DNA of 64,000 bases from Penicillus capitatus (GCA_965649825.1 OZ287719.1:107309-171308), one strand, 5' to 3'. Positions 3,001 through 26,850 are shown, counted from the stretch's first letter. Numbers and translations: made by a program. Notes: generated from the sequence alone by a model not told the origin.

Positions 3001-3106
3001 TCTTGCATTTTGCTAGGATGCCTGCACAGTATCCTTCGTTGTCCGTCAATGCACACAGGAGCACCGTGATGACAAGGATGAAGTGAAACGTCTTTTGGGC
3101 GTTCAT
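1..3106 (-). CDS. Multi-exon ankyrin-repeat gene (paralog G1): signal-peptide-like start, unknown N-terminal domain, ANK exons; 3' end lies beyond the window edge; intactness uncertain
   Basis: N-terminus MNAQKTFHFILVITVLLCALTDNEG at 3106; ANK exons VQALLEAGSDVEKTEMPSGMRPLHVAAAIG (ORF 14..280), LISKGADVKAVDTKGNNAL (~400-510) and ALLDDGADIEEIDRGGWNAFHWA (~720-830). Exon boundaries not fully resolved. Confidence 0.55.
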
Positions 3107-7170: not shown

Positions 7171-7963
7171 ACATTAGAAGAAGTGTCCGTCGGGCTTCAT
7201 CCGAGACACGATCTCGTCGGGAATAGTGCAGAACAGACCCACAATGCATAGGCAATCGTACGCAACCCTCCCATCGACGTCTTCTGCAGTCGTGGATGCT
7301 CCTTTGTCAAGCAGCATCTGTGGAGCATCGAGCGAGTTCTGCGCAGTGGACAAACAGAGTGACGCACCTCAATGATCTCTGGTATTCCGATTGCTGCGGC
7401 AACATGAAGAGGTCTCATTCCGCTAGGCATCTCTGTTTTTTCGACGTCGGAGCCAGCTTCAAGCAGAGCCTGCACAAACAGATTCTTGTCTGAGAAGACC
7501 TCCGACACATGAGATGGATGTACTTTTACTACTTCGACGTTCACAGTGCATATTGTGGCAATGAGTACTGTCATTCCAATATCATCATTAACTGCGTCGA
7601 TATCTGCGCCTTTATTGATTAGATACTACACAAGAATCCCACTAAGACAGAGCGTTCATGTGGCTCGAGACGCACTTTCATGACTTCAGCAAATTCACCC
7701 TGCTTGGAGGGTTCTAGGTGGTCCGAAATTACCATCTGCGCCGCTAAGAGAAGTGCATTATTTCCTTTGGTGTCAACTGCTTTGACATCTGCGCCTTTAC
7801 TGATTAGATACTACAGAAGAGTCTCACGACGACAGAACGTGCATGTGGCTCGAGACGTACTTTCACCATTTCCGCATTTCTTCTACCAGACGCATAGTGA
7901 AGCGGAGTACGATGAAAGAAATCGGTTGCTTCGATGTTTGCTCCTCTGTCGATTAGATACTAC

Positions 7964-9765: not shown

Positions 9766-10753
9766 ACTACAGAAGAATCCCGCGACAAATGAAACGTCCG
9801 TACAGTTCGTAACACGCTTTCGCAACTTCTGTTCTGTCCTTAAACAGCGCCCAATGGAGTGCAGTCCATCCATCGCTGTCGATCTCCTCGATGTCTGCTC
9901 CGTCGTCCAGCAGAGCCTGTTTACGAGTGGTTCTTCTCTGAGAACCTTGTCACACTGAAGAGACGCACCTCCGCTTATTTCACGTCTCCATCCATCGCCG
10001 TCAGGTGAAAAGGAGTCGTTTCCTGTTTGTCATGTGCATGGAGCTTTGCGTTGCGCTCGAGCGGCATACGTTGTCAGTCTCCGCTGGCGCGCATAACCTA
10101 GATCATGGTTGCACCTGGTGAAGTTCGTCCCTCTTTTGAACGGCGAGGTGTGAGGTAATGTTTCCGCCGTCCACGCCCGCGAACAACTGTGCCCCTTTCA
10201 GACAACGACACATACGTTTTTACGACGTCGCGTGAAGCTAACCGGTGATACCACGGCTGCCGGATGCCACACGGGAAGCGAGCAGAAGACAGAGCCACAC
10301 GTACAGCACACGGCACCTCATGTTTACGCGAACGCGAAACGTCTATGCGGCGCAGAGGCAAAGCGTTTAGCACGGACTGGAATGCGAGGCTTGAAACAAG
10401 GCACTGACAAAGACACGTGGTCGAATTTGTAGGCTGTCTGGACTGTCCTGCGAATGCACCGGACAGCATCCTTGCGTCTCCTCCACGCATTTTCGCGCAG
10501 CATGACTCGGATGACGAAACCTCGAACGTCTTTCTCCACAGCACGGGATGAGGGCTGGGGAACGTTGATTCTCTGGCGAGTCGCTCTGTGTGACGCTGCA
10601 CGGTGTTGTGAGAATTCGCTCGAAAGGGTAAAGGAATGCGCGTTCGCGGTAGGCTGTTCGTTTGTGAAACGTACAGATCGCAATTACAATCCTGTGATCC
10701 AGCGCGTCCATTTTAATGTTCCTTTTTTCTAAGATTATTCTCATCGTATTCCA

Positions 10754-11769
10754 TCAGAACATGGGCCCACCTATCTTTCGCCGAAATGGTTGAAGAAAAT
10801 CTCGATGTACGTTATAGGGGTAAGACCCGTCAGGCAGTTCGATATCCCAACGATGTTCACTACGTTTCTTTGTCAATACACAGGGAGAAACCCACTTAGA
10901 ATAGAGCTTAGAGTCTAAGCGATCAACTAATTTGGAGTTGTACCAAGATACTTCCATGCCCTCGTGAATAGGAACATCTTTGACGTTCTTTGCATATCTC
11001 TTGGCAGACTGCTCGTGTGCTCTTTTGATTCTCTCGTAAGCCAGTTTCCGATCTGTTGCTAATTGCTCATTATTGGCTAGTCTGCCACTTCTATGAATTC
11101 CTTTAAGGAGATATCTTGGACAGAAAAGAGTAGTGCAATGGACTGTTCGATTTATTTCTTGCACACATTCGTTAATGTGTTCGGTCCAGTCTCCTCTTTT
11201 CTCTTTCCAAATTCTCTTTAGACGATTGACGAAGTTCTTGTTGTACGCTTCAATTGTGCCGGCGCTTTTATGTGAATAAGGGGTGTGTGAATGATGTCAA
11301 CACCATGTCACTCACAGAAACTCTCAAACTCTTTTGAGATGAATGCTGCTCCATTGTCACACAGGATACGTTCCGGTGGGCCATTCAATGCAATCCAGTT
11401 CTTCAGCAGCTTTATGATATGAGTAGTAGAGCACGTTTTAGATGCTTGAGCCGTGCCAGACTTGGTAAATGCATCTATTCCGGTTGCGATAAAACGATAA
11501 CCATGCATTCCTCTAGGCAACGGACCGATGAAATCTAAACACAGGGTATGGTTCGGTGTCGGACTATCTGTCATCCCCAAATCTACGTTGTGTTGCAATT
11601 GTCTAAATTGCTGGCAAACATCACAAGTCTGAACGAAACTTTTGACGTCTTCGTAATCATTTTCCCACCGGGACCCATCCGATCTCAAATTCAACCACGT
11701 CTTTCTAATTCCAAAGTGGCCTTTGTGTGCTCTAGCAATCGCTTCCCTTGTTGTACCCCGAGGGTACAA
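10754..11769 (-). pseudogene. Retrotransposon integrase (HHCC, DDE, GPY/F-like C-terminus), interrupted
   Basis: AHKGHFG...CDVC zinc finger; TLCLDFIGP, ILCDNGAAF and SAGTIEAYNK catalytic motifs; KWVSPCVL..WDIELP..NVHRDFLQPF tail; TGA at 11308-11310 and a 1-bp deletion in a C run near 11280. Confidence 0.88.
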
Positions 11770-13556
11770 ACTTGGTAGCCCTGGTGTTTTTGGTTGATTT
11801 CCGAGGTCACTGGATTAGCCACTTTCCATCGACTGAGTACATCTGCAATCGCATTGTCCTTCCCTTCTACGAAACGGAAATTCAGTTTATCTAGTGAAAA
11901 ATGATGCCTCAGCCAACTATACTGTCGTTGTATCCTTAAATCCTTGAACTTGTGCAAAAATGTTGGCTCCTTCAGCCACTCTATTGTAGCCTGGTTATCC
12001 GAATATACGGTAACAGTAAATCCCTTCGTCATGTAAAAACATTGCTTTAAAGCTTCCACGATCCCCATCAATTCCCCCAAAAAACTTCCTACCTTCTCGC
12101 TTGTAGCGAACGAACCAAAAACACATGGTTGCAAAGCTGAGTTAAACAGAACGAATCCAAACTGGTTCAAAGGATTTCCACACCAATCGGTGTACAAATG
12201 AAACGGACCCACCCTCCGTAGTGTCAATCTGTATGCATTGATACACAAATCGGTCACTGTCTCCTGAAAAATCTTATTCGCTTGTTTGTAATCATTATTT
12301 TCTCTTTTAAGAAACGGCTTCAGCTCATTCATGACATATGTGTATTTGTAGCAATATGGTGCGACTTGTTGACACAGCCCCACTGCTCTTTGAACGTCAT
12401 GGCGTGATTCTACCCTTGGCAACTTCTGTAGAATGGCTTGCAGCTTGTGGTATGGGTTGATGGTGCCGTTATTCAGTTCTGTACCCAAAAAACTCACGGA
12501 GCTCCTGAACCAATCACATTTGTGTATGTTGACCGTCAGACCATATTCATCAAAACGCTGTAATAGCAGCCTAGTCTTTTCAAAGAGATCATTCACTGTT
12601 TCTCCACCCACTAGTATATCGTCAAAGTATCTTATCACGTCTAGTCCTTGCAGAATGTGAGTCATTCTATTATTAAAGAGCTCCGGACTTATGTTAACAC
12701 CCTGCGGAAGTCTACGGAAACCATATGTTATCCCCTTCCAATGCAATGCGAAAAACTTAGACAGACTATCGTCTATTGGTATTGAACCGTACCCATGGAC
12801 CACGTCAACAATATTAAAAACAGTCCAACTTGGATCGATTTTACTAATTGCGTCAGCTACCGGGGTTATTGTGCCACCTTGACTCCCTTTTAGATATGTG
12901 TTGATATCTCTGAAGTCAATAGTCGGTCTTATTTTCCCATTTGGTTTTCTCAAAAAGTTCAAAGGTGCCACGACTGCATGAATGGCTTCCTCCGTAGATA
13001 ACACTCGAATGATCTCTTCTTCAAGTAACGACTCTATCTCTTCGGTAATCTCTTTTTCGGTCAGATCGGAAAAATAGTTTTCTCGCCAGCAAGGTTTAGG
13101 CTCAAAATTCCATACTAGATCCCTTTCGCTAACTCTAATACGTAGTAAATTCTCATTCGCTGATCTGACCTTGTCACAAAAAACATTCGGGAAGATGCCT
13201 TTTAACCTCTGTACTAAACTCATCGTATCGTGCTTATCTACTGAACTCGTCACCATTTGTATTTTCTTCGTATCGTTCTTTAATGCATGCTTCACCCCGT
13301 TAACATCGATAATCCAATCTATGTTCACCTTTCCACACACTAACTTCATTTTGCTTGTGATATGCTGTGGAACATCAGTTTGGTTGAAGATTACTATGCT
13401 TATTTGCCCATTTGTGTAAATCTTGCAACGGCAGAATATTCCTTTATTTTGTGTGCAGTCAAAAATTGCTTTCCATTCTGCGTCTTCGGAAAATCTAAAA
13501 GGTAAGATAATTCTTCTACTCTTAAAAGGCCCTAAAACTATACTCCTTCCTGCCAC
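11691..13556 (-). CDS. Reverse transcriptase - RNase H
   Basis: KIRPTIDFRDIN, RRLPQG, YFDD catalytic motif; RNase H motifs LYTDW, GELMGIVEAL, VYSDNQA and GKDNAIADVLSR. Confidence 0.93.
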   Translation of the reverse strand: MAGRSIVLGPFKSRRIILPFRFSEDAEWKAIFDCTQNKGIFCRCKIYTNGQISIVIFNQTDVPQHITSKMKLVCGKVNIDWIIDVNGVKHALKNDTKKIQMVTSSVDKHDTMSLVQRLKGIFPNVFCDKVRSANENLLRIRVSERDLVWNFEPKPCWRENYFSDLTEKEITEEIESLLEEEIIRVLSTEEAIHAVVAPLNFLRKPNGKIRPTIDFRDINTYLKGSQGGTITPVADAISKIDPSWTVFNIVDVVHGYGSIPIDDSLSKFFALHWKGITYGFRRLPQGVNISPELFNNRMTHILQGLDVIRYFDDILVGGETVNDLFEKTRLLLQRFDEYGLTVNIHKCDWFRSSVSFLGTELNNGTINPYHKLQAILQKLPRVESRHDVQRAVGLCQQVAPYCYKYTYVMNELKPFLKRENNDYKQANKIFQETVTDLCINAYRLTLRRVGPFHLYTDWCGNPLNQFGFVLFNSALQPCVFGSFATSEKVGSFLGELMGIVEALKQCFYMTKGFTVTVYSDNQATIEWLKEPTFLHKFKDLRIQRQYSWLRHHFSLDKLNFRFVEGKDNAIADVLSRWKVANPVTSEINQKHQGYQVCTLGVQQGKRLLEHTKATLELERRG

Positions 13557-13812
13557 AAAGATGAGCCACCCATTTCTTTTAAAAGGAAAAAATTCCGGTT
13601 TGATCTCCTCTGTTACATGGAGGCAACCAGCACTTGAGACTTATTTTTGTTTCCTTTTCCCCTTTTTTGTCCAATTGCGACTTATGAGAATTAGCTTTTT
13701 GATTTCACCCCCCTTTTCTCTTCGATTATTTGTCGCCTGCTGAAAAACAGGCTCCTCTGTCAGTTTTTTTGGCAATGATACCTGGTGAATAAGAATCTTT
13801 CTACCGTCACTA

Positions 13813-16527
13813 TCAAAAACACAATCTTGTTCGCAATCTAAACGGAGGCCTAGCGTTTGTAAAGCTTCTAACCCCAAAATTGGCTTTGTCACCCCCTTGC
13901 ATACTAAGAACGAGAGTTTTGTTTTCCTTGTCGCCAAGAGAACAATCTAACGTGACTTCTCCTAAAGGTTTACTCGTGCTATTGTCAAATCCAGTTACTT
14001 CTTTGGTCGACGTTGTTTCTAAGACAAACTGATGGGTTCTAGCCAAGGATTCCGACAAAACATTGGTTTCTGCCCCGGTGTCCAACAAGAACGAAATCTT
14101 GTTGGGAATGCCAGCAATCTTCAAAGGAAGATTGTATCGGATCAACCTTTTTTGCTTTGTCCCCGTTTCTGTATCGGTTGTCTGTACTACGTTTGTCTGA
14201 GAAACACGGTCTTTGGCCACTCTCTTTGTGCTTCTGCGTGGACAATCCCTCGCTGAGTGCCCTCTTGTTTTGCAGTGTTCGCACAAATATCCGTTTCCAT
14301 TTGATTTGACCTGTTGTCTGCCGGGGAACGGAATTCTTGGCGCGCTTCGTCCATCAGATGTAAACTCGTGCAAGATTCTTTGGACCCGTGACCACTCTTG
14401 GGCGTTGTCACAGCCAAGCGTCCCAAGTTGGGCCTGTATTCTCGGATGGGCAATATTGAAAACGCGTTCGAACGCAACCATGTACTTCTCTGGATGTCGG
14501 ATCTTGTCCATTAAAGTCGTCAACCGAATCGAAAACTGGCTAATATCTTCCTTTCCTTTGGGCAACATTCTTTGCAGATCTTGGATCGCTGGACCGAATG
14601 TAACTTGTTGCCTTTTGACTTGGTCGATATGAACATCTGGCTGTATTTCTCCCACTTCTCCTTGTGGTTGCCTTTGCACATGTTCCTGCACTCTCCGATA
14701 CTGCCTCTCAAGTCGTCTGCGGTCATGATCTGTCATACCACCTCCCAGGTGCCTTCTCTCCGCTTCAATCCAGTCATTCATCGATGGGGCTCGTGCCTGC
14801 TGCCTTGGCGCCTGTGGATCCCTTCGAATTCTGTCGTCCAACTCTTCCACTCTTTGATTTAAAGTTTGAAGGCTTGATTCGATCGTGCCTTGCATCATTC
14901 GTTGTTGATTGATTACCCTTTCCTCCATCTCTTCTGCATTTCTCGCTACACCCTCTGTGAGATTGCGAATCTCTTCTCTGACTTCTTGCATCATACGTTC
15001 CTGCCTCGCATCTCCTATAGTCGCGATTGCTTCTTCTCTCTGATGCTGCGGTTGCTGAGGAGGTTGCTGCGGTTGCTGTCCCTCCTTTCTGCCCGTCCAT
15101 AAACCTTTTAGGCCTTCCCAATCGAATCTTAGGCAAAACCATGCGAATCTCATTGTCCACCATAGGCCTCGAACGATGCTTATCGCCATTCTTATCTTCC
15201 TCGCCAAATATGCGAAGATTGATCCAATCCAGTTTATGATCTTCCCTAGGACAATCATGACTCCGAGCAGTTGCCAAGCATTCTTCGTTATCATGACCCC
15301 TCGCAGGGCCGGCCAGCCGAATATATCCCACAAGACTCCAACGGTCCACGTCACCATGTTATCTCGAGCGCCGAGGATCCACGTGACTATTCTCTCTATC
15401 CAGGTCTCTTCTCCTCGGCTAGTTTTCCATCCGTCGTTTATGTCGTCACATGCGCATTCGTCGAGGATGGACGTGATGTTTTCCATGTGGCCTTTGATGC
15501 TGTGCAATGTCTTCTTTATTTCATCTGCCATATCATCCGACATCCTGTCGTCGCTCCCGATCGTTGTCTTCTTGTGTTTATCTCCTCCTTCCGCGGTGTG
15601 ATTCATCAATTTCATGAATTCGTGAGCCGTTCGGAGGAAGACCTTCATGTCTCGTTCCATTTTGGTTTCTTTCTTTGGCATGTTGTTGAGGGTCGCTGCG
15701 GTGAAGGCGGAGATTATCCCGGGTGATGATACTGCTGCGGTAACCCGCCCTCCAACCATCCAATTGACAATTCCGTGTATTCCCGTTGTCAGCACAGACT
15801 GCGTTAACACGTTGAAGGCGCGTTCTTGCAAACCTATCTCTGGCGTAACCTCCACTGGTTCCACTGTGAGCGGCCACTCGGCCTGAGGCAGAGCGTCTTC
15901 AACTCCTTGCATATTGAAGACATCTTCCGGAGTCGTCTCTGTCACTGCCTCTTGTTCCGGTGTTTTCATCGATGCTTGGCTTTCCTCACGCGTTGGCTCT
16001 AGGCTCTCTGTAGATTCTTCTATCGTCACTTCTGGTTCCTCGGCCTTGGCTGGGTCTTCTGCAAACTCTTCGATCGTCGCCTCCGGTTCATCTACCCGGG
16101 CCCTCTGATAATCATCTTTGGAGATCGGCACGGCCTCTTCAAATCTTCGACGTAGGGCCCTTGCGATCGAGACACGGGTTTCGTTGTCTTCGCTATCCCC
16201 GACTATCATTTCATATACTCGATGCCGCGCTGTCTCTAGAAGCTCCTTCGGTCGCCATTCCCTATCGGATGGTGTCCCACTCACTACTAAGAAAAGCAAA
16301 CTGTTTGTGGTTTTTATCGTTTTTCCGTCCCAAGTAAGTGATCCTCCCTCTGACAGAACATTGACAAGAACCTTCGCCTCACTCAGGGTCATTCCCTGTA
16401 GAGCATCGTATACGATGACGCTGTTTGGACATCCACCGATCGCATCAATGATCGTTTTTTGCGTCTGTCCTCCAAGATCCTCGTGTTCTTCACTGTGTCC
16501 CTTTATGCAGTGCATGCAGTCTTCCAT
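13813..16527 (-). CDS. Extended Gag-protease ORF: AAA+-like N-terminal segment, TM helices, coiled coil, capsid-like region, zinc knuckle, aspartic protease
   Basis: CEHCKTRGHSARDC knuckle; FLLDTGAETNVL protease active site; the protease C-terminus (PILGLEAL) continues in ORF 13641..13937 after a frameshift; hydrophobic block WIERIVTWILG...FAWFCL. Confidence 0.85.
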   Translation of the reverse strand: MEDCMHCIKGHSEEHEDLGGQTQKTIIDAIGGCPNSVIVYDALQGMTLSEAKVLVNVLSEGGSLTWDGKTIKTTNSLLFLVVSGTPSDREWRPKELLETARHRVYEMIVGDSEDNETRVSIARALRRRFEEAVPISKDDYQRARVDEPEATIEEFAEDPAKAEEPEVTIEESTESLEPTREESQASMKTPEQEAVTETTPEDVFNMQGVEDALPQAEWPLTVEPVEVTPEIGLQERAFNVLTQSVLTTGIHGIVNWMVGGRVTAAVSSPGIISAFTAATLNNMPKKETKMERDMKVFLRTAHEFMKLMNHTAEGGDKHKKTTIGSDDRMSDDMADEIKKTLHSIKGHMENITSILDECACDDINDGWKTSRGEETWIERIVTWILGARDNMVTWTVGVLWDIFGWPALRGVMITKNAWQLLGVMIVLGKIINWIGSIFAYLARKIRMAISIVRGLWWTMRFAWFCLRFDWEGLKGLWTGRKEGQQPQQPPQQPQHQREEAIATIGDARQERMMQEVREEIRNLTEGVARNAEEMEERVINQQRMMQGTIESSLQTLNQRVEELDDRIRRDPQAPRQQARAPSMNDWIEAERRHLGGGMTDHDRRRLERQYRRVQEHVQRQPQGEVGEIQPDVHIDQVKRQQVTFGPAIQDLQRMLPKGKEDISQFSIRLTTLMDKIRHPEKYMVAFERVFNIAHPRIQAQLGTLGCDNAQEWSRVQRILHEFTSDGRSAPRIPFPGRQQVKSNGNGYLCEHCKTRGHSARDCPRRSTKRVAKDRVSQTNVVQTTDTETGTKQKRLIRYNLPLKIAGIPNKISFLLDTGAETNVLSESLARTHQFVLETTSTKEVTGFDNSTSKPLGEVTLDCSLGDKENKTLVLSMQGGDKANFGVRSFTNARPPFRLRTRLCF

Positions 16528-16844
16528 GTGCGATTTTTTTCGGTGCTCATTGTTCTGAGCCGTTCCGAGATGCTGTCACACTTGTTTGTTGTGCAGTACA
16601 AGATTACTGCCACGGCCTTTCTCTCTCCTGTTTCGTGGAGCAGTTGTAGATCCAGATTTCTTTTTGTACCGAAAATGTAGTCGTCTGTCCAGTCGCCTTG
16701 TCCGTGTACGAAGTGTCGGATGGTCTCAAGTGTGGTCTTTCTGACATCTGAAAGGTCAGCAGATTGGTGACCCCAAAGTGCAGTCACCCAGAATAGGCTC
16801 AATCCGAAGAGGAGCAGGCCATGCAAACCTCGCTCCGAAACCAT
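16503..16844 (-). CDS. Upstream segment of the Gypsy polyprotein (signal-peptide-like start, first part of the AAA+-like fold), joined to the next ORF by a -1 shift at an A7 run
   Basis: The ATG spans the LTR/PBS junction; LLLFGLSLFWVTALWG hydrophobic leader; TIRHFVHGQ; G-AAA-AAA-AT at ~16534-16541 links it to ORF 13813..16527. Confidence 0.55.
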   Translation of the reverse strand: MVSERGLHGLLLFGLSLFWVTALWGHQSADLSDVRKTTLETIRHFVHGQGDWTDDYIFGTKRNLDLQLLHETGERKAVAVILYCTTNKCDSISERLRTMSTEKNRTWKTACTA

Positions 16845-16878
16845 GTTGTGAGAATTCGCTCGAAAGGGTAAAGGAATG

Positions 16879-17125
16879 TGTCGCCGGTCGGCCGAGCAGA
16901 AAACAATACACAGCGGAAGACTCTTACATTAATCGGAGCAAGGTCTTGAGTGTTCAGAATGTGTCCTTATGTATGCGCGCGGTGACGCGACGTTCCTAGG
17001 CAGGTGAATCATCGTGCTGTCAAAACCACAGAAAAGGGCCCTTTGTCCCGTAGGACAAGACAGGCAGCGTTCCTTGGCACGGATAACCCCCGCAGAACAA
17101 GACAGTGTCACATCGCTCGGCGACA
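16879..17125 (-). mobile_element. LTR related to the TR-GAG LTR family, inserted into the Gypsy 5' LTR
   Basis: TGTCG...CATCGCTCGGCGACA; shares CAGCGGAAG, GGCAGGTGAATCA and the last 19 bp with the LTR at 7964-8199; no TSD visible. Confidence 0.75.
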
Positions 17126-17127
17126 CT

Positions 17128-17403
17128 CGTCGTCGTCGGCCAGGGCGAATTCCCGATCGAACACACACGGTTGCACAAGGAAAAGCTTACAAAACGTCAT
17201 GAGCCCCAGGGCTTTTATCCGGTCCACGCGATGGACAGGTGAGTCACCCACCTCTCAGCACCATAGAACGAGGACCCCTCATGGCCCCCGTCTCCCTTGA
17301 CACGACTCCTGAGTACCCCTTTCAAGCCCGACCCCCTCCCCACCGAGGCAGTCCCATCGCTGCAGCGAGGCCATCACATCGCCAACTCCAAATCTTGGCG
17401 ACA
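17128..17403 (-). mobile_element. Second, more diverged LTR-like segment abutting the previous LTR
   Basis: Starts CGTCGTCGTCGGCC (cf. TGTCGCCGGTCGGCC), contains GACAGGTGAGTCACC (cf. GGCAGGTGAATCACC) and ends GGCGACA exactly where host-paralog homology resumes (17404). Confidence 0.45.
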
Positions 17404-17839
17404 TGTCCATCGATCCATTCTCCTCTTCGTATTCTTTGCTCGTCGACTTCGCATAGGGCAGTCCATCGTGGAAATGCCCTCCGCTGGCCACCTGTCCATC
17501 TGCGTTCGTCCGTGCCAGGACGTAAAATCAAGATCAATAGCGACCATGAAGGCGCGTGGTTGAATCATCCAGTATGTGTCTGCGCTGTCATACAATTGTC
17601 GGTCACATCAAGATAGCAAGCAATCTCGTCGAATGGTTCTGTAGACGCGCACCACGCTTTGTTTTCTAGCCTTGCATGCCGACGCAACAGACATGACGTG
17701 GGGAGTAAGTATCAAGACAGTAACGAATCTGATAGAAAGAAAAACCTCTATCGCCCAATCAGCGACCTGTCGGAGGATACTTTGGACGCGCCTTTTAGTG
17801 ACAACTAAGTCAGAATCCAGGCTTTTATCGTGCGAAAGC

Positions 17840-17911
17840 GCCCTCGTGGTGTAATGGTTGGCGCACTTGAAGTTTTCTCAAGAGGCGTGGGTTCGAATCC
17901 CGCCGAGGCGC
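17840..17911 (+). pseudogene. tRNA-like element (pseudo-tRNA or SINE head) with intact Pol III A/B boxes
   Basis: A box TGGTGTAATGG; B box GGTTCGAATCC; D stem GUGU/GCGC; anticodon stem CUUGA/UCAAG; T stem GUGGG/CCCGC. The anticodon loop AGUUUUC is non-canonical and the acceptor stem is imperfect. Confidence 0.6.
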
Positions 17912-18595
17912 CCCGTGAGTCACTCGGGTGATAATGACTGGCCGGAGGGTGAAGCGGCGACTCATCATGATCAAGAAAATCAGAAGATTGTGCAATTAAG
18001 ACGCGGGTCAAGTCCAGACCGGAGCATGCGGTTATACGTGAGGTGGACGACGAATCGTCGCAGACGCTGTGAGACATGTGAAGCGACGGATGGAAGCACG
18101 AGTCTTCTAATTGAACGATTGAACGATGAATTGACAATGGGCGTCGGGTTGCTGATATGCTAATTAAGCGCATGCAACTGTAAAAATCCAAATCGAATCG
18201 AATCGTGCGAAAGCCATGGTGAGCCGAACTAACGCGCGTAGCGGAGACGAAACAAAACGGCAACACGCAAAGAATTGATAAAATTACAGTTCGGCCGTTT
18301 CCCCGGAAGCTCTCGCCGATCACACATACGATGAACAAAAGCACAAGGCGCGTCTGAGCCTCTTATTTCTTCGGTGTACCTTGACTCGTTTGGCGCAGAA
18401 CGTCCCTCGTCTTCCGTCCTCGCGTTGCACGCAGGTCGCCTCGGAGTCTTCTCACGTCTCCTCGAGAGTCCATCCATTCCGTCCACTGCAGCCAGCTGGT
18501 TCACGCCAAAAAAAAGAAAAAAGGCAAAAAGATAGAGAAAGATGAAGGTGAGTGGATGCAGCAACCGACGCAGTCTTTTGCGCCGGCAGCTTTAG

Positions 18596-18665
18596 GGCTA
18601 GGGTGACTGCTCAGTCAAGGTGACCGAACAGTTTCGACGGCGCCACCCGTCTCATCAGACCCCTT
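18596..18665 (-). ncRNA. Hammerhead ribozyme HHR-1 (type I)
   Basis: Minus strand: AAGGGGU CUGAUGA GACGG-GUGGCG-CCGUC GAA ACUGUUCGGUCA-CCU-UGACUGAGCAGU C / ACCCU AGCC. 12-bp stem III; GUC cleavage triplet; predicted cut between 18605 and 18604. Confidence 0.88.
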
Positions 18666-18765
18666 AAGAGTATTTGCCGATTTAGCGCTATCCAGTCCCG
18701 CCACGAGGAGGCACGGCTCGACGATGCGTTGGCAAACACACCGCCGTTGGGACCACAATTTTGGG

Positions 18766-19086
18766 TAATCACGAAATGAAACGAAATGAAATGCCATTTG
18801 GTGGGGTGGTAATCACGAAATGAAATGCCATTTGGTGGGGTGGTAATCACGAAATGAAATGCCATTTGGTGGGGTGGTAATCACGAAATGAAATGCCATT
18901 TGGTGGGGTGGTAATCACGAAATGAAATGCCATTTGGTGGGGTGGTAATCACGAAATGAAATGCCATTTGGTGGGGTGGTAATCACGAAATGAAATGCCA
19001 TTTGGTGGGGTGGTAATCACGAAATGAAATGCCATTTGGTGGGGTGGTAATCACGAAATGAAATGCCATTTGGTGGGGTAATCACG
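18766..19086. repeat. Minisatellite, 34-bp unit TAATCACGAAATGAAATGCCATTTGGTGGGGTGG, 9 copies
   Basis: GCCATTTGGTGGGG recurs at 18793, 18827, 18861, 18895, 18929, 18963, 18997, 19031 and 19065; no spacers. Confidence 0.95.
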
Positions 19087-19658
19087 AGGATGTCCTTCCT
19101 TCCGGGATTCCTCAACCAGGTCGAAGGGAAGGCCGCGCCTACAAGAGACGACCCTCACCCCGCCTTCGGGACTAACGGGTGGGCCCGACGCCGTAGAAGC
19201 CGCTCAACAGTCCGCGCCACAACCGTCGCACGATTGCCGCCATCGACGGCAGCGTCTCATGCGCTGTTGTATCATTCTTTCGACGGACAACCGAACGACG
19301 ATTCGACGTAGTGGGACCGGAGCTGCGCAACTGTGGGGGAGTATCTCCCGGAAAGAAGGGCCATCCGAGGATGTCCCCCCGATCCGAGATTCCTCAACCA
19401 GGTCGAAGCAAAGGCCGTCTACAAGAGACGACCCTCACCCCGCCTTCGGGACTAACGGGTGGGCCCGACGCCGCAGAAGCCGCTCAACGGCCCCCGCCAC
19501 AACCGCCGCACGATTGCCGCCGTTCTCGGCAGCGTCTCATGCGCTGTGGTAAGGTACTTCAATAGTGCAAAACTTCAATATGACGGAACAATCGAGGACG
19601 CGTTCGACGCATCCGGACTGGAGCTGCGCAACTACGGGGGAGTATCTCCCGGAAAGAA
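19086..19658. repeat. Two diverged direct repeats of ~280-290 bp
   Basis: Both start GAGGATGTCC (19086, 19367), share CTACAAGAGACGACCCTCACCCCGCCTTCGGGACTAACGGGTGGGCCCGACGCCG and end GGGGGAGTATCTCCCGGAAAGAA. Confidence 0.9.
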
Positions 19659-19679
19659 AGACGAAAAATGGTACGCGTC

Positions 19680-19965
19680 ATCACTTATATAACCCTTCAG
19701 ATGATGTGACAGCGTCACATCATTTTGTCGCGCAATCAGCCAATCACGACGCGATTTCGGAATACTAACCGTCGGAAAAAGAAGCTGGGAGGAAGGCGTC
19801 GATTCAGCCGATAGCCAATCACGTTGCAGTATCGGAATATTCCATCTGTCACATCAGAATATTCCATCTGTCGCATCAGAATATTCCTATCGAATCAGCC
19901 ACTCAGCGCGCACCTTTCAAAGCGACGTTGACAGGGTCACATCACCATCCAAGTATTTAAGGCCT
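19680..19965. promoter_or_regulatory. Putative bidirectional Pol II promoter
   Basis: Leftward TATATAA (plus strand TTATATA at ~19685-19691); CCAAT boxes at 19740 and 19815; 22-bp repeat with GAATATTC palindrome at 19835-19887; rightward TATTTAA at 19954-19960. Confidence 0.4.
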
Positions 19966-20356
19966 ACCATGGCGCGCATTTCGTCTTTTGTCGTTAGGGC
20001 GGTTCTACTGGTGGGTTCTTGCTTCCGGGTTTCGGCTCGGAACATAGAATGCCAAATACCGGGTCAGTGCTGCCAGGCTATAAGCCGCCGACCCGGCCCG
20101 TCGGTGTTGCGAGGCATCCCTTCGGGAGGTGCTGCTGACCATCACCTTCCCGCCATGGTTGGCGCAAGCAAAGGTCGTTGGACGCTGGATTCGGAGTGTT
20201 CAAGGCGTGTTGAACAGGCGGCGCGTAGCGGGTGCCTAAGACCATCACACCTACTCCGAAATTTGCGCTCCGCCGCACGCTTAAGACATACGGCTCCACT
20301 GCGCTAATGCCGCGCCGCCTTCGGGTGACGCGTCACTGGTTCAGTGGGGAGGGTGG

Positions 20357-20465
20357 GCTTGGGGTCATCCTAGCCAATCCGGATCTTTCCGGATCGCGTC
20401 GAGGGTTTTGGTGCCACGACGCGAAGGGGTCTGACGAGACGGGTGGCGCCGTCGAAACCCTAAGT
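20357..20465 (+). ncRNA. Hammerhead ribozyme HHR-2 (type III, stem I closed by a branched loop)
   Basis: GCUUGGGGU C / AUCCU AGCC ... AAGGGGU CUGACGA GACGG-GUGGCG-CCGUC GAA ACCCUAAGU. 9-bp stem III GCUUGGGGU/ACCCUAAGU; loop I holds hairpins AUCCGGA/UCCGGAU and CGCGUCG/CGACGCG; predicted cut after 20366. Confidence 0.85.
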
Positions 20466-20639
20466 CTTCTGTTTACGTGTCGTCCGAACCGCGCGCGCTC
20501 GAATTACGCGTTCCATTCACGCTCTCCGTGTCGGAGCTTAGCCAATGTCTAGCACACGGGGTAGATCCGTCGACCGCGTCCGCGGTTTTTCTGTTCCGAC
20601 GAGTCGATGTCGCGTTCTGGTTCGCGCCGAGACGCGGGA

Positions 20640-20716
20640 AAGGGGTCTGATGAGACGGATGGCGCCGTCGAAACCGCAGAGTGCTGCTCCGTTGCATTCG
20701 GCGGTCGCCCTAGCCA
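20640..20716 (+). ncRNA. Hammerhead ribozyme HHR-3 (type I)
   Basis: AAGGGGU CUGAUGA GACGG-AUGGCG-CCGUC GAA ACCGC-A-GAGUGC-loop-GCAUUC-G-GCGGU C / GCCCU AGCC; predicted cut after 20706. Confidence 0.88.
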
Positions 20717-21756
20717 GTCGTTTTATTTTCTGTCTCTTTTTCGCCTGTATGTGTCTATGTTTCTGCCCACGTGCGTTAACACCACCTGACCTTTACAACC
20801 GATTACAAGGCAAAAAGCATATGTGTGTATGTATACATGCTCCCCACTTTCGTTCGGTTTGTTTATTCATCTGCCGTCGTGTCCACTCAGTCTTTTCAGC
20901 GAATGCTGTCCTATCGAGACGTCGTCTTCTGTCGTCGACGCCGCGCCACATTAGACAGACTTTGTCAGCAAAGCGACCGCTGCCAGATGCAACACACCTG
21001 CAGGAAAGTGTCACTGTCGCGTCATTAGGCACAGAACCCCTCTCACCGTCGTGACCAACACCGTCTTGCGTTTTGCTAGGATGCCTGCACAGTGTCCTTC
21101 GTTGTCCGTCAATGCACACAGGAGCACCGTGATGACAAGGATGAAGCGAAATGTTCTTTGGGCGTTCATGTCCATGCCGCAGAGGTTGTAAAACATCCAC
21201 AGTTCCATCATCGAAAGAGTGGTGAATGCCCAAGTAGTCTGCGAAGACCAAATCGATGTTAGTCACTTGATCGAATGCTTTTCGTCTGTGTCGAAGTTTT
21301 TCGACTATTCGTGAAGCGTGGGGCAGACATATCACAAGTTTCCTTGCTCTGTGCCCGGCACATCAATCGGCAGAATCAGGGGCCGCCGGTCTTTGTTTTG
21401 TTTCGCGATAGTTTTTCGGTCTGTCTGCTTTGTCTCGTTACCAGTCTGACTTGAGCTATGCACGAACTTTTGAGTCTTGTCAAGTGTAGCGTGTCATATT
21501 GTTTACGTCGGTATAGGGCGTGTGCAAACGTCCAGTCAGCGCGAATCGGCGCGGACAGCGTGCTTGCGGGAAAAGACTATCAATCTAGATATCGCACACA
21601 TGTGCGACGGGCGGACAACACCTGAATAGAGTGTGGAGAACCGACATATATAGTCAATCGTATGCACATAATAACCCAATCGTTGGGCGCGCGAAACAAA
21701 ACTCATGTGAAATATAGAGGATGGATGGATGCCATTCATTACATACCAACGTTTCG

Positions 21757-22195
21757 GTTCGACTTATAAAGATCGAACTCAAGTTGACAAAGAAAAGGCC
21801 AGAAAAATAAGTCCGAATAGAAATGGCCCGTTCGATTTATGAGGACCGAACTCGACTTGGCAGTGAAAACGGCCACGGCATAAAGCCCGGCAGTGAATGA
21901 GACTCATGTCGACAAAGAAAAGGCCAGTGCAATGAATCCGAATGGAAACGGCCCGTTCGATTTATCAGTATCGAACTCGACTTGCCAGTGAAACAGCCAG
22001 AGAGATGAATCTGAATGGAGCCGGTTCGATTTATAAGTATCGAACCCATCTTGCCAGATAAAACAGCCAGAGAGATGAATCTGAAAGGAGACGGCCAGTT
22101 CGACTTATGCCTGTCAAACTCGACTTGCCAGTGAAACAGCCAGATGAGGCCCGTTCGATTTATCAGTATCGAACTCGACTTGACAGTGAAACAGT
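21757..22195. repeat. Degenerate repeat array with six embedded palindromes GTTCGAY-N8-RTCGAAC
   Basis: Palindrome copies at ~21757, 21830, 21955, 22024, 22098 and 22153, usually followed by TCGACTTGCCAGTGAAACAGCCA. Confidence 0.85.
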
Positions 22196-23142
22196 CACGG
22201 CGTCAAAGATACCCGGATACCTTCCGATACCTTCTGATACCTTTATCCAATTCATGCCCGTCACGAACCCTTGCAACCATTCGACTCACGGACACAACGT
22301 CTCTTCCGTTGCCGCCGGCAAACAAAACGTTCGGAACTTTGTCTCGAATGGGCGCTTTCCAGTCTCGTCGGCATCCCAAAACAAACGGCACAAACCAGTC
22401 CCTTGGCGATCTGACCGTCCGTCCACACTTCCGTTCCCGCATTCCCTAGACCAATTCCCAGCGCCTCCGCACTAGACCTACCGCCGGATGCAAACCCCGT
22501 GGAGCGACATACCATACCGTCTAGTCTGCCACTCTCCCTTGTGGACACCAACGTCTTCCTCAAGCTGACGACGAAGCAAAGCTCCGTAGCGAAACCGACG
22601 CAAGAGATTCACGGACCACGGCTCTTGAGAAAAGAATCCACGCAGAACACCCGAAGCGTGCTTGCAGTGGAACGGCAATACAGGAAAGAAAAAACAACAA
22701 GCCTACGACACACACCGATAGCGGAAAGACGGCGCTGGCGCGGGAAAGAAAAAACCACGTTTCCTACGAAGACACACAAGAAAAGAAAAAACGCGCGTCG
22801 AGCCATGGCGATCGCAGAACTCAAGGTCAGCACGCCGCAGTCAACCGAGGAACGTGGCCCACGGCAATCCGCGTTCCCAAGCCGTCATCACCCCACGCTC
22901 TCCACTAATCGCACACCTAGGTCGTCGTGCTTTGGCCTCACCGCGTAGTCGCCATCCATATTCTCCCCTTTATCACTCATCCGAGTTACGCATCAGATCG
23001 CCAACTCATCCTCTTTTGCCGACCCTTGACATCTCTTCTCTCCTCGCCCGCCCATCTCGACAAAGCTCCGCCTTCCACGCGAGAAGCCCGATACAACCTC
23101 TAACGAATCCTAATCCGCATACCGGACCGCTGCATCGGTCAC

Positions 23143-24414
23143 CTATCTTCTGGATCTCTTTCCAGAATCCCTAGATGACCCCTCCGCCTCACCGACGCCC
23201 TTCCGCTTTGCATCGGCCGCTTTCTTTATGTCCGACATCCGCTGTTCACGAGCCCGTGTGCTCCGTAACCCGTAGCGTCGCTTTGCCTCTCTTTCCCTTG
23301 ATACCTCTTCATCGTAAGATGATTCCCAAGAACGACGTTTGGAACCGCGGCCCCTAGATACCGGCTCTTCCACTTCCATAACCGTGTCCCCGTCGTCGTC
23401 CACGTTCCCTTCTTCTCCGTCGACGACTGTCGGTATTCCTTGCACCACGTTCACAGGCGTCCCCTCGGCGCCCTCCTCGACGTCCGCCGGCGTCCCGTCG
23501 GCGGTTGACGCCATCGGTATGCCTTGCACGACGATCACGGGTGTCCCGTCGGCGATCTCCACGACGTCCGCCGGCGTCCCGTCGACGACTGTCGGTATGC
23601 CTTGCACGACGATCACGGGTGTCCCGTCGGCGATCTCCACGACGTCCGCCGGTGTCCCGTCGACGATTGACACCACCGGTATGCCTTGCACGACGATCAC
23701 GGGTGTCCCGTCGGCGATCTCCACGACGTCCGCCGGCGTCCCGTCGACGACTGTCGGTATTCCTTGCACCACGTTCACAGGCGTCCCATCGGCGATCTCC
23801 ACGACGTCCGCCGGCGTCCCGTCGACGACTGTCGGTATTCCTTGCACCACGTTCACAGGCGTCCCATCGGCGATCTCCACGACGTCCGCCGGCGCCTCGC
23901 TGGTGCCCGGCACAGCCAGGCTTATCAAGAAGCTCACGAAATTATGGGCCAAGTCCACGAAGTCCTCTGATGCACGGCGTTCGTCGGGCGCTGTGCTCAT
24001 GAGGAAATCAACTGTTGAACTCAAGTATTCCACGAAACGCAGCGTTCTTAGGAATTCGTAGTCGTCGTTGGCGTCGGCGACCAAGTAGTTCGACACCGCA
24101 GCTTGCCATAAAAGGTTAGCATAGTCCGCCCAGGTGCGAAGTTGCACATCACTAGGGCCAGGTTCGTCCGCTCCTCCTGCTACACGTCGCGGAGCCAGTT
24201 GCCGGCTGACGTGAAGGACCGCCAGAAATCTATCTGGGTCTGTCCCTTCATACGGTGATCCTATGTCCTCCTCGCCGGGCACGTATGCAGTAAACGTGTC
24301 AAAAAGAGCCGACTGAAGGGCGTTGAAGAACACGCGGTACCCCTCACGTTCGACCAGTTGGTTGTCCAACGCTTGCAGAACGCTATGAATAAGCGACGAC
24401 ACGGACGAACTCAT
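23143..24414 (-). CDS. Orphan protein (~423 aa from MSSSVSS) with six 26-aa tandem repeats and a basic, NLS-like tail
   Basis: ORF 23143..24573; repeat GTPADVVEIADGTPV(N/I)VVQGIPTVVD with a 78-bp period; C-terminus RGSKRR...KRKG...GKRSRR; no recognised domain. Confidence 0.6.
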   Translation of the reverse strand: MSSSVSSLIHSVLQALDNQLVEREGYRVFFNALQSALFDTFTAYVPGEEDIGSPYEGTDPDRFLAVLHVSRQLAPRRVAGGADEPGPSDVQLRTWADYANLLWQAAVSNYLVADANDDYEFLRTLRFVEYLSSTVDFLMSTAPDERRASEDFVDLAHNFVSFLISLAVPGTSEAPADVVEIADGTPVNVVQGIPTVVDGTPADVVEIADGTPVNVVQGIPTVVDGTPADVVEIADGTPVIVVQGIPVVSIVDGTPADVVEIADGTPVIVVQGIPTVVDGTPADVVEIADGTPVIVVQGIPMASTADGTPADVEEGAEGTPVNVVQGIPTVVDGEEGNVDDDGDTVMEVEEPVSRGRGSKRRSWESSYDEEVSREREAKRRYGLRSTRAREQRMSDIKKAADAKRKGVGEAEGSSRDSGKRSRR

Positions 24415-24566
24415 CGTTGTTTTTTTTGCAGAAAAATCCGAGAACCAAACGCCAATAGCGCTGAGGGCAGTTTCGGCAAAAAGACGCGAAACGGCAAACG
24501 GCAAATACGCGGAATAATTGTACGGCGGTACGCTTTTATACTCGCGAAATGCAATTACGTAAAATC

Positions 24567-24740
24567 TTCTCATCTACGGTTATGTCACGGAACTCGCATC
24601 GCGACGGCTGACGGCGGCGAACCTTCTCAGCTACGGTTTTGTCCGTCCCGGAACTTTCTCATCTACGGTTATGTCACGGAACTCGCATCGCGACGGCTGA
24701 CGGCGGCGAACCTTCTCAGCTACGGTTACGTCCCGGAACT
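24567..24740. repeat. Two 89-bp direct repeats upstream of the orphan ORF, followed by a CCAAT motif and an (ATCA)n tract
   Basis: TTCTCATCTACGGTTATGTCACGGAACTCGCATCGCGACGGCTGACGGCGGCGAACCTTCTCAGCTACGGTT at 24567 and 24656; ATTGGCTGATTCGAC at ~24757; ATCAATCAATC at ~24830-24851. Confidence 0.85.
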
Positions 24741-25515
24741 CGAACTCGCATCGCTATTGGCTGATTCGACGGCAGAACGATGTGACGTCCATTAATCAAC
24801 GGCGTCGCCATTATGGATGATGATCGATCGATCAATCAATCAATCAATCAATAGCAAGCCAATTAATGGAATTAGTAGTCAGTCGATCTGCCAGTCTGGC
24901 GTCGCGTAGACTGTTTGGAGGATTTTACATCGAAGAATCGTATAAGAATGAAACTTTTCAAAGGCAAAGCCTTACACAAACGAAAGTCAAGAACTGTAAT
25001 TCTGCAATGCTTTTATTCTGTTGAGTGATGTCACATCGAGGCGGATGGGTGCATGCGTTTCTAACGATACAGACGAAGGGTCAGCGATGAGGGAACGTGT
25101 GACCGAACGACGACGCATCACGGTCGCCGTTACAGAGAAAACAAAAGAGAATGCAAAAACAGCAAGGAAAAGAGGACGAGACAAATCAACTAGCTATTCG
25201 ATACGGTCCTCGGGAAGAAGTAATGGCGACAGTGGGAACACCTTCACGTGTATGCCTTCCTAAAGCGACATCACACACCAATGCATCTCCTTAGGGAGTC
25301 GCATCCGAAGCGCCAGTCGCTAAGAACTCCGTGCGTAAAATCAAGATCGTTCAGATCATCGGTCCCGCGCTCGAGAAGCGACAACTTGATGCTTTTGATC
25401 TCCAAGGCAGCGACGCGGCGAAGATGAACGGTCCTTCCGGATGCAGGAGGATATGTATGACGACTCTATGCGGATGCCGCAGATCGGGATCACCGTCCGA
25501 CAGCAAGCAAAGCTG

Positions 25516-26850
25516 TTACATCGACAGCAAAGACGAACATCGAACGGTCTGACACAGAGAGAAAGACAGGTAGCTAGCTTCGTGTGATAGACAAAAAAGC
25601 AAAACAGTTTCAAGAGAGAAACACTGGTACGACATGACGGTAAAAAAACAGGTAAGTGGTGGGCGATCTGTCTCTGAACCTCCAGATCTGGTCCATTCCG
25701 AAAGATGACGTGTGTTTGGTGAATCGGAACCGGTCTTTGCACTGGGCTCCATGTCCTCTTCATCGAGACGCGTTCTCTTCTTTTTCGCGCCGGCGTCGAC
25801 GAGAATCTAAACGCAAGAGCCGTATGTGATCGAGTACAGACAGCGAGCGCATGATGTCACCTCGGCAAGGATCGGGTTGCCATGACTGGCTGCAGCGGAG
25901 ATCGGCGTGCGCGATTCCTCGTCCTTTGAATCAACGTCGGCCCCGGCATCGACGAGCTCCTACGATGGACACGCCCGTCTCGATCGTTTTATGCGTGTGC
26001 TCTCTCGCCAGTGTGATTTCGGCGTGTCCATAGAGTGCCGCTTGATGAAGCGCGGTCCTCTTTGCCAGAGTTATCGCCTCGACGTCGGCATCGACCGTCA
26101 GGAAATACTGCAACCGCTCGTCACCGCAGGCGCGTTGTCACTTGATGCAATGACGCACTTGGACCATACGCAGATTCCCCTTCGACACGGCATCGTAGAG
26201 CGGCGTCCTTCCGACAGTATCACCGCCGTTGGTATTCGCTCCGCCTTTGTACAAAACCTGCAACGATGTGCTTGCGCCGCCATTCTTTGCTTTGAGACGA
26301 GGAGGCACCTATGCGGTTTCGACGTCCCCATCGAGCGCCGCCTCATGAAGCGACGTCTGATCGCGCCGGTCGGCCCTCAAAGACACATAGATGCCAAACC
26401 ACATCGCTTTACCGCTGAAGACGGACGTACATCTCGATTTCTTCAAGCCACGGTTTCAGGATCTTGGCGAACGTCGCAGGAGAAACGATGGTCCTGTCTG
26501 TGCGAGACTCCTGTCACAGTCTGTGTGAGGAAGTTCACGATTCGTCGCATCGTCGACGGAGAACGTGGTCGAAAGCGGCGCGATCGCATCATCCCCCAAC
26601 TCGCATTTTGTTGCATACTTCAAGCATCTGTGTTTCTTCGGCTAAAAGCCGTAGAATCTCATCTTCCCCCTTTACTCAGGTAGTGACAACTGAATAAGGA
26701 TTAATGCGTTCCATCGAGATATTATGTAAACAGTCTCGACAATTCCTCTCAATGGAACATGTTGGCCAAAAAACAGATGACAACGCAAAAGACAACGAAG
26801 GACAAAAAACTCTCAAGTGACAAAGGCGAACGGTGCCGGACATCCACAGA
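25516..26850 (-). pseudogene. Chimeric ankyrin paralog (G3-like 5' part fused to G2-like ANK exons)
   Basis: 25790-26371 matches 3890-4480; 26368-26720 matches 6712-7060; the junction lies at a shared GGTC. Confidence 0.55.

Follow-up and report, generated by a model that had tools for sequence, protein, structure and literature searches.

A conserved pair of predicted hammerhead ribozymes in the green alga Penicillus capitatus that may excise a 340-nucleotide RNA

In plants and animals, circular RNAs arise from hammerhead ribozymes arranged in tandem (PMC4918200, PMC7761336). Plant long terminal repeat (LTR) retrozymes carry type III hammerheads in LTRs of 300 to 400 bp, show 4-bp target-site duplications, possess a tRNA-Met primer-binding site (PBS) and a polypurine tract (PPT), and have 600 to 1000 nucleotides (nt) between their two cuts (PMC4918200). 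Animal non-LTR retrozymes are high-copy tandem repeats of 150 to 400 bp with type I hammerheads and stable monomer folds (PMC7761336), and they are probably mobilized by Penelope-like elements (PLEs) (PMC7761336; a 2026 preprint). PLEs and Terminons themselves carry minimal hammerhead motifs next to the reverse transcriptase (RT) gene; in some cases, reverse-complement telomeric repeats come after the motif (PMC8557442, PMC6431247). Genomic hammerheads that excise circular RNAs are established in flowering plants and animals; green algae are barely charted, with one table entry for Chlamydomonas reinhardtii that lists type I hammerheads and six putative retrozymes of about 2 kb (Additional file 1, PMC4918200). 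Here, we describe a hammerhead locus in a 64,000-nt stretch of DNA from Penicillus capitatus (OZ287719.1:107309-171308), referred to below as the window. Two hammerhead ribozymes on its plus strand, HHR-2 and HHR-3, bound an interval of 340 nt, and a third, HHR-1, faces the opposite way. We favor, with a probability of about 0.55, the reading in which a ~170-nt hammerhead repeat once formed a short tandem array here, with the architecture of animal non-LTR retrozymes and satellites, and this locus is what remains of it; a plus-strand transcript would be cut twice to give a 340-nt RNA with apposed ends.

Our own hammerhead descriptor, which asks for CUGANGA, helix II, GAAA, helix III, a U-H dinucleotide at the cleavage site, and 4 bp or more in helix I, matched exactly three times in the 64-kb window, with C17 at 20366 (plus), 20706 (plus), and 18605 (minus), and found no further hammerhead elsewhere in the window or in the related loci L001/L002. 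In 200 dinucleotide-shuffled windows, the mean was 0.02 matches and the maximum 1, with a match in 4 of the 200; this chance expectation, set against the three copies seen, we count in favor of the preferred reading. The core CUGA(U/C)GA, the GAAA element, and the cleavage triplet GUC are present in all three copies, each of which has helices I and II of 5 bp and a helix III of 11 to 12 bp in the correct register. Hammerhead-constrained folds lie only 0.8 to 3.8 kcal/mol above the unconstrained minimum free energy (MFE). Sequence and computed folds together make it very probable that the three ribozymes are genuine hammerheads. A looser pattern, CUGANGA-N(6-36)-GAAAC, was matched seven times in the window, with 1.9 matches expected, and three of the seven contain a near-identical 28-mer (18631-18658, minus; 20431-20458 and 20647-20674, plus). 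Among the other matches, those at 9500-9527 (plus) and 45478-45504 (minus) are not ribozymes and overlap the PBS-like sequence GCTCCGAAACCA of LTR retrotransposons, and those at 22565 and 52711 failed the helix tests.

An earlier note on this DNA had placed the HHR-2 and HHR-3 cut sites 340 nt apart on the same strand, which sequence and descriptor confirm (20366/20367 and 20706/20707, the slash marking the scissile bond here and below). Its account needs amending in that HHR-2 is of type III, HHR-3 is of type I, and Rfam calls none of the three copies. HHR-2 (20355-20467, plus), for which sequence, descriptor match, constrained fold, and conservation in relatives all speak, has its cut site upstream of its own core, in the stretch GGGCUUGGGGUC/AUCCUAGCC at 20355-20375 (site A). 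Its helix III joins 20355-20365 with 20457-20467 through 11 bp, G-U pairs included; helix I joins 20367-20371 (AUCCU) with 20426-20430 (GGGGU) with a closing insert of 54 nt that contains two hairpins. The core CUGACGA (20431-20437) and GAA (20454-20456) enclose helix II (20438-20442 with 20449-20453) and loop II, GUGGCG (20443-20448), and the hammerhead-constrained fold reaches -54.7 kcal/mol compared with an MFE of -55.5 kcal/mol. HHR-3 (20642-20716, plus) is indicated by sequence, descriptor, constrained fold, and a core and site kept in relatives. Its scissile bond (site C) lies in GGCGGUC/GCCCUAGCC at 20700-20715. Helix I pairs 20642-20646 (GGGGU) with 20707-20711 (GCCCU), and the core CUGAUGA (20647-20653), helix II (20654-20658 with 20665-20669) around loop II AUGGCG (20659-20664), and GAA (20670-20672) follow. 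Helix III, 20673-20684 with 20694-20705, consists of 5 bp, an A.G mismatch, and 6 bp closed by a 9-nt loop; the tail is AGCCA (20712-20716), and the constrained fold has -34.5 kcal/mol versus an MFE of -37.0 kcal/mol.

HHR-1 (18595-18665, minus), recognized by sequence, descriptor, MFE, and a sub-threshold Rfam match, is a type I hammerhead 1.7 kb from the plus-strand pair. The 5' strand of its helix I (18663-18659) pairs with the 3' strand ACCCU (18604-18600), the core starts at 18658, helix II joins 18651-18647 with 18640-18636, and helix III is a perfect 12-bp hairpin (18632-18621 with 18617-18606); the tail is AGCCC (18599-18595). Helices II and III are already present in the unconstrained MFE structure. 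Self-comparison revealed that the three copies share just 35 to 45 nt, AAGGGGUCUGAYGAGACGGRUGGCGCCGUCGAAAC, at 89 to 97% identity, as well as a post-cut tail, A/G-(C/U)CCU-AGCC-(A/C). In the type I copies HHR-1 and HHR-3, helix I is GGGGU with ACCCU or GCCCU, helix II is GACGG/CCGUC, and loop II is (G/A)UGGCG. The helix III sequences of the three copies are unrelated, yet each forms 11 to 12 pairs, and these unrelated but pairing strands we also count for the preferred reading. The flanks have diverged beyond recognition, while the cores have remained 89 to 97% identical.

Beyond helix I, HHR-2 contains GCCA at 20373-20376 (plus; positions 1.7-1.10), a proposed pseudoknot strand complementary to the UGGC of loop II at 20444-20447. 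Its equivalents are 20713-20716 in HHR-3 and 18598-18596 in HHR-1 (3 bp), and after circularization the GCCA at 20373-20376 would also be complementary to 20660-20663 of HHR-3. We infer that loop II UGGC and tail GCCA form a pseudoknot of 3 to 4 bp between stems I and II, a contact which Perreault et al. estimated to be likely in about 40% of hammerheads (PMC3088659). Both partners are invariant in the peptides of relatives, and no covariation is visible.

The tail also bears on the very unlikely alternative that the copies are relics of Penelope-like 3' ends of the Athena, Coprina, or Terminon type or of pseudo-LTRs, in which the hammerhead would be followed by reverse-complement telomeric repeats and HHR-1 would be an inverted, 5'-truncated copy. 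Consistent with such an origin, the copies are in inverted arrangement, and HHR-1 is followed by ACCCTAGCCCTAAAG, in which one plant-type CCCTAAA unit occurs; hammerheads with telomeric-repeat ends and inverted truncated copies are described in the literature (PMC6431247, PMC8557442), and PLE pseudo-LTRs are proposed as the source of animal retrozymes in a 2026 preprint. However, the telomere-like CCCTAAA is a single unit found after HHR-1 only, and HHR-2 and HHR-3 carry CCUAGCCA, better read as the loop II pseudoknot partner; because the unit is confined to HHR-1, the pseudoknot explains the tail better than does the telomere-like reading. Moreover, PLE hammerheads are minimal with little or no helix III, in contrast to the 11 to 12 bp seen here, the two arms share nothing outside the core, and the scanned open reading frames (ORFs) of the window, 19 of the 23 with at least 200 residues, revealed no PLE RT or GIY-YIG domain, their sole RT being that of an LTR element.

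Double cleavage is predicted to release nucleotides 20367-20706 (plus), a 340-nt RNA with 61% G+C that contains the HHR-2 core near its 5' end and all of HHR-3 save the 3' strand of helix I. In the joined ends, GCGGUC/AUCCUAGCC, helix I of HHR-3 is formed by G-U, G-C, G-C, G-U, and U-A pairs (GGGGU/AUCCU), and the hammerhead-constrained fold of the ligated junction has -51.5 kcal/mol versus an MFE of -54.0 kcal/mol. Pairing and fold thus support the earlier claim that ligation of the ends rebuilds a complete HHR-3. Provided that the locus is transcribed, the 340-nt RNA is likely to be excised, and a circular RNA is plausible, at odds well short of even; the retrotransposing retrozyme is the least supported step. 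In the computed MFE structure of the 340-mer, the helix II/loop II segments 20441-20452 and 20656-20667 pair with each other through about 12 bp around the palindrome GGCGCC. This inter-core pairing could silence the ribozymes after excision or permit dimerization.

The interval consists of two half-units of about 170 nt each, 20367-20538 and 20539-20706. Outside the cores, 20367-20423 aligns with 20539-20639 (TAGCCAAT...CCGG...CGCGTC...GGTTTT...CGACG) with a score of 26, compared with 7.6 +/- 4.0 for shuffled sequences, only 1 of 500 of which reached or exceeded it. The junction of the half-units, GGAG/CUUAGCCAAUGUC at 20535-20550 (plus), is a dead internal site recognized from its sequence, the alignment of the halves, and the lack of a descriptor match. 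It has kept the tail motif UAGCCAAU (GGAG/CUUAGCCAAU) and has lost GUC, with its U-H dinucleotide, and the helix III partner; therefore, no cut is expected there. The 340-nt interval is best read as a decayed dimer of a ~170-nt repeat. A degenerate core-like sequence, UCCGACGAGUCGAUG, at 20596-20610 (plus), about 45 nt upstream of the HHR-3 core, may be a trace of another decayed unit, and one related locus (P0027) has a comparable remnant, 'SDETAAV', at the equivalent place.

These features can be combined into a model of how the pair might have arisen and act. Two repeat units would be left on the plus strand, with the cleavage site between them decayed. The strand after each type I core (ACCCUAAG...) would have had two possible partners to pair with, its own downstream one and the identical one in the unit before. 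Unit 1, HHR-2, would have lost its own partner and would use the helix III strand and the cut site of a vanished upstream unit; since its core pairs with this leftover upstream strand, HHR-2 is topologically of type III. Unit 2, HHR-3, would be an intact type I ribozyme, and HHR-1 a solo type I copy on the other strand. A plus-strand transcript would then fold HHR-2 and HHR-3 and be cut after C20366 and C20706, and the released RNA would begin with a 5'-OH and end in a 2',3'-cyclic phosphate. The sequence at its 5' end, AUCCUAGCCA, would substitute for the downstream helix I strand and the pseudoknot partner of HHR-3. As it offers the same strand and partner as the natural sequence, HHR-3 could re-form across the ends, which might in this way be held together for ligation, either by reversal of the hammerhead reaction or by a tRNA-ligase/RtcB-type enzyme. 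In the circle, HHR-2 would fail to re-form, being left with only about 3 bp of helix III.

Relatives of the locus were found at several distances. An ENA metagenome-assembly contig from the same species (L004) aligns collinearly with 16002-24257 (97.6% identity), and all three ribozymes are present in it. Between 17 and 24 kb it is nearly identical to the window, with a single-nucleotide polymorphism (SNP), A20416T, in the hammerhead region, and because of this near-identity it is uninformative on constraint. The exact core pattern was found in one JGI metagenome contig only (L003, Ga0099817_1511750), not in IMG/VR, and not in prokaryotic genomes. Positions 358-390 (plus) of this contig contain the same 33-nt core, with loop II GCGGCG, in otherwise unrelated sequence about 150 nt upstream of a trypsin-like coding stretch, and the descriptor found no acceptable cleavage site there. 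Neither the paralogue L005 nor the distant relative L006 has a hammerhead.

Further loci were recovered through spurious translation. The translated cores, in the open frame KGSDETGGAVET, were used as a profile against a representative library of 1.84 billion proteins (E <= 0.001), which gave 13 proteins. Eleven of them (P0024-P0034) are spurious ORFs crossing hammerhead cores in ENA assemblies, and six cluster mates of the 11 are likewise spurious ORFs across homologous loci in several ENA assemblies; P0035 and P0036 are unrelated repeat proteins. A peptide-profile search of a word-indexed protein collection gave no match. The helix III strand, cut site, and tail of HHR-2, GGGCTTGGGGTC/ATCCTAGCC (GGGCTTGGGGTC/ATCCTAGCCAATCC), are kept in relatives as GGLGV/ILA, and the form read in the other frame, AWGHPSQSGS (AWGHPSQ), is identical at 15 of 15 residues even in the most distant loci. 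The core, helix III, and site of HHR-3 are kept as AVETAEC..AFGG(R/H/N)(P/L)SQ. Both cores lie in one ORF in P0027/P0037 and P0030/P0041 (four ORFs including two cluster mates); in P0027, the cores are 240 nt apart, with about 371 nt from cut to cut. Two contigs, of 895 kb and 208 kb, each contain both locus types, and therefore at least two loci exist per genome. The 206-kb contig to which L004 belongs contains a second HHR-3-like copy, P0026. In P0028/P0038/P0039, an HHR-3-like site ('SVATGGRP') precedes an HHR-2-like site by about 78 nt, an arrangement that hints at longer arrays than in the window.

Nucleotide changes were deduced by parsimony from the peptides of relatives and not from their DNA. 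The catalytic core and helix II are free of them. Changes affect positions 1 and 6 of loop II, C17 (C>A, giving the allowed triplet GUA), helix I at 1.1 (G>A, turning G-U into A-U) and 1.4 (C>U, turning G-C into G-U), and one helix III position (C>U, turning C-G into U-G); as read from the peptides, all of them are compatible with a hammerhead. In relatives, conservation is highest in the two cores and over the first 35 nt of the excised piece. Judged by these peptides, the hammerhead pair is conserved in related genomes, and its copy number appears low.

Conservation of this kind also bears on whether the locus might be an inert fossil, untranscribed or catalytically dead, whose intact-looking cores would stem from recent duplication or gene conversion. 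Such a fossil would fit with an internal site already lost, with the degenerate, core-like sequence near 20596-20610, with the JGI contig, whose intact core lacks an acceptable cut site, and with the likeness of the window and L004, which is too close for a test of constraint. Recent copying, on the other hand, accords poorly with cores that have stayed 89 to 97% identical between flanks diverged beyond recognition and with three different helix III sequences that all pair. Moreover, the distant paralogous loci P0027 and P0030 keep both cores, with changes at permissive positions alone. We therefore regard a fossil as quite improbable.

A host role in cis is the alternative suggested by the surroundings of the pair. 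A candidate promoter for the plus-strand transcript may lie at 19738-19962 (plus), about 400 nt upstream of site A, where the sequence offers AGCCAATCACG at 19738 and 19813 and TATTTAAGG at 19954-19962. HHR-1 and HHR-2/HHR-3 face outward from the repeat-rich, promoter-like region at 18.7 to 20.3 kb and might trim divergent transcripts, the 340-nt piece being a degraded by-product; variants of this proposal would have the ribozymes create uncapped 5'-OH ends of downstream RNAs or 3' ends of upstream ones. The divergent orientation with CCAAT and TATA-like motifs between the copies is in line with such processing, and gene-associated hammerheads have precedents (PMC3088659). The pair is syntenic and of low copy number rather than dispersed, homology in P0034 runs at least 140 nt past site C, and the L003 core lies upstream of a coding exon, with the reservation that its own cut site is imperfect. 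Yet the sequence downstream of each cut revealed no conserved gene. The 112-residue ORF upstream of HHR-2 (19969-20307) matched no family, the protein collection does not list it as a gene, and the TATA-like motif is too near its ATG. Processing in cis would also leave unexplained why the two cores and the start of the excised piece are the best-conserved parts. We consider it unlikely in either variant. Quite unlikely, too, is a domesticated, low-copy gene conserved in the lineage of siphonous green algae instead of a selfish repeat, which would produce a ribozyme-processed and probably circular RNA of about 340 to 370 nt whose conserved 5' hairpin and two palindromic loop II segments serve a host function.

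Several observations weigh against the preferred reading of a decayed repeat that releases an RNA with apposed ends. At gathering thresholds, Rfam called none of the three hammerheads, and at E <= 10 it gave no hammerhead match for HHR-2 or HHR-3. HHR-1 was matched in the right register at 17.8 bits by RAGATH-1-hammerhead and at 16.8 bits by Hammerhead_3, far below the cutoffs of 56.3 and 48.5. The length of the inserts in helices I and III probably accounts for this, and the hammerhead family described here would escape Rfam-based annotation. Helix I of HHR-2 is weak, with 5 bp of which 2 are U-G. The computed MFE of the 340-mer, -140.3 kcal/mol, does not differ from that of shuffled sequences (-136.6 +/- 5.2 kcal/mol; z = -0.71), so that, unlike described retrozyme RNAs, it is no more structured than expected. 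Tandem Repeats Finder detected no tandem repeat at the interval, an alignment that hints at a lost 'unit 0' upstream of site A falls short of significance, and further copies are missing from the remaining ~60 kb of the window as well as from ~60 kb of other DNA from close relatives (L001/L002, L005). Among the 19 of 23 window ORFs of at least 200 residues that were scanned, none has a PLE RT or GIY-YIG domain. Peptide conservation concerns one frame, in which non-synonymous changes alone are visible, and the relatives were retrieved via the core peptide itself, a bias from which only the second cores of P0027 and P0030 are free. The earlier view of the locus as retrozyme-like thus holds for the conserved paired hammerheads and the predicted 340-nt release; it does not extend to LTRs, a PBS, a spacing of 600 to 1000 nt, a stable fold, an array, or a PLE partner.

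The window is eukaryotic nuclear DNA with long ORFs, LTR retrotransposons, and satellites, and the best named relatives of an RRM protein encoded in it are from Bryopsis (51% identity) and Ostreobium (45%), which points to a siphonous, Bryopsidales-like green alga as the probable source. Between HHR-1 and HHR-2 lie a 34-nt satellite (18781-19079) of 8.8 copies that are 100% identical, with more copies in L004, where alternate units carry TGG>CCT, and, between the inverted hammerheads, a direct repeat of about 280 to 300 nt (19085-19357 and 19366-19658; 81% identity). A tRNA-like sequence at 17840-17910 (plus), about 700 nt from HHR-1 and adjoining an LTR element, scored 36.9 bits with the Rfam tRNA model and was not called by ARAGORN; position 33 is G and the acceptor stem is imperfect, and the L004 counterpart has a 4-nt GCGT duplication in the variable region. 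The LTR retrotransposon at 11691-16843 (minus) comprises a gag/aspartyl-protease ORF (13813-16527), an RT ORF (11691-13556), and the PBS-like TGGTTTCGGAGC (16832-16843). Individuals differ by an insertion of a Ty3/gypsy-type element of about 5.6 kb (RVT_1, RNase H, rve) at 4571-10209 of L004, which the window lacks (around 24252-24257), and of the 51 SNPs that separate L004 from the window across their 8-kb alignment, 27 fall within 16000-16750.

Segmental duplications of 89 to 92% identity with conserved order connect 2261-4480 with 17404-26371 and 1-3125 with 7295-10604. The spacer with the tRNA-like sequence and the hammerhead cluster measures 3366 nt, compared with 442 nt in the paralogue, and the duplicated sequence partly encodes ankyrin-like repeats broken by frameshifts. 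A 476-residue ORF (23143-24573, minus) consists of tandem repeats of 26 to 27 residues (DNA period, 78/162 nt) and has no Pfam match; its orthologue P0022 is 91% identical and its paralogue P0023, on the same ENA contig as P0022, 56%. A local gene family with Chlamydia-PMP repeats and a right-handed beta-helix occupies 42117-43502, 51964-53094, and 58213-59349 (minus).

Compared with the plant LTR retrozymes described by Cervera, Urbina and de la Pena (2016), the locus similarly presents two same-strand hammerheads flanking a noncoding RNA predicted to be circular, an upstream ribozyme of type III, and a host from the green lineage. It differs from them in its downstream ribozyme, which is of type I, and in the distance between cuts, 340 nt here and about 371 nt in P0027 versus 600 to 1000 nt. 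Self-comparison revealed no LTR-like direct repeats, only the 35 to 45 nt common to the copies, and no tRNA-Met PBS is present near the locus (a PPT was not searched for), the PBS matches at 9518 and 16832 belonging to LTR retrotransposons. Target-site duplications were not recognizable; the paralogous segments (2261-3125 and L005) lose similarity before the hammerheads, leaving the boundaries not definable, and an empty-site comparison with 2261-3125 failed in the same way, well short of the hammerheads. The locus is not a plant LTR retrozyme. The hammerheads tabulated for Chlamydomonas are also of type I, reside in a chlorophyte nuclear genome, and are in some cases paired on one strand; as far as their description allows a comparison, these pairs differ in being about 2,000 nt apart and in belonging to a different green-algal class. 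Penelope-like and Terminon hammerheads resemble the present ones in being eukaryotic, repeat-associated, and found as inverted copies, with the hint of a telomere-like unit after HHR-1, but they are minimal, dimer-dependent, and located by an RT gene, whereas those described here are full-size. Unlike viroid-like and satellite RNA replicons, the locus is chromosomal and syntenic between individuals, and neither the descriptor nor Rfam found a ribozyme on the minus strand of the 340-nt unit. With the pseudoknot-stabilized hammerheads (Perreault et al. 2011), the copies share a loop II that can pair with nucleotides beyond helix I (UGGC/GCCA) and 5-bp helices I and II; the pseudoknot proposed here differs in having 3 to 4 bp and no visible covariation.

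The metazoan non-LTR retrozymes and satellites, such as newt Sat2, Schistosoma Sm-alpha, and those of coral, mussel, and axolotl, consist of type I hammerheads in head-to-tail repeats of ~150 to 400 bp, which the type I motifs, the vestigial ~170-nt units, and the 340-nt piece would fit, and they similarly lack LTR, PBS, and PPT (the last with the limit given above). These elements self-cleave to monomers that circularize, steps that are predicted from sequence at the present locus. They differ in forming long homogeneous arrays, whereas a syntenic decayed dimer of apparently low copy number is found here, and in having a G+C content below 50% compared with 61%; moreover, the 340-nt RNA is not unusually stable, one of its ribozymes is of type III, helix III is long, and the host is a green alga. 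Since the interval reads as a decayed dimer of a ~170-nt repeat, the architecture appears closer to that of animal non-LTR retrozymes and hammerhead satellites than to that of plant retrozymes. Our literature search found no paper linking hammerheads with Bryopsidales; given the Chlamydomonas entries, a hammerhead element in a chlorophyte is not new in kind. If the RNA is not made, the locus would be another fossil hammerhead repeat. If it is made and circular, it would provide a readily testable algal circular RNA and a link between plant and animal retrozymes. What appears noteworthy is the derivation of a type III/type I pair from one repeat, kept in few copies within a green-algal lineage and invisible to Rfam, and the locus illustrates how a type I tandem repeat may decay into such a pair that is still predicted to be functional.

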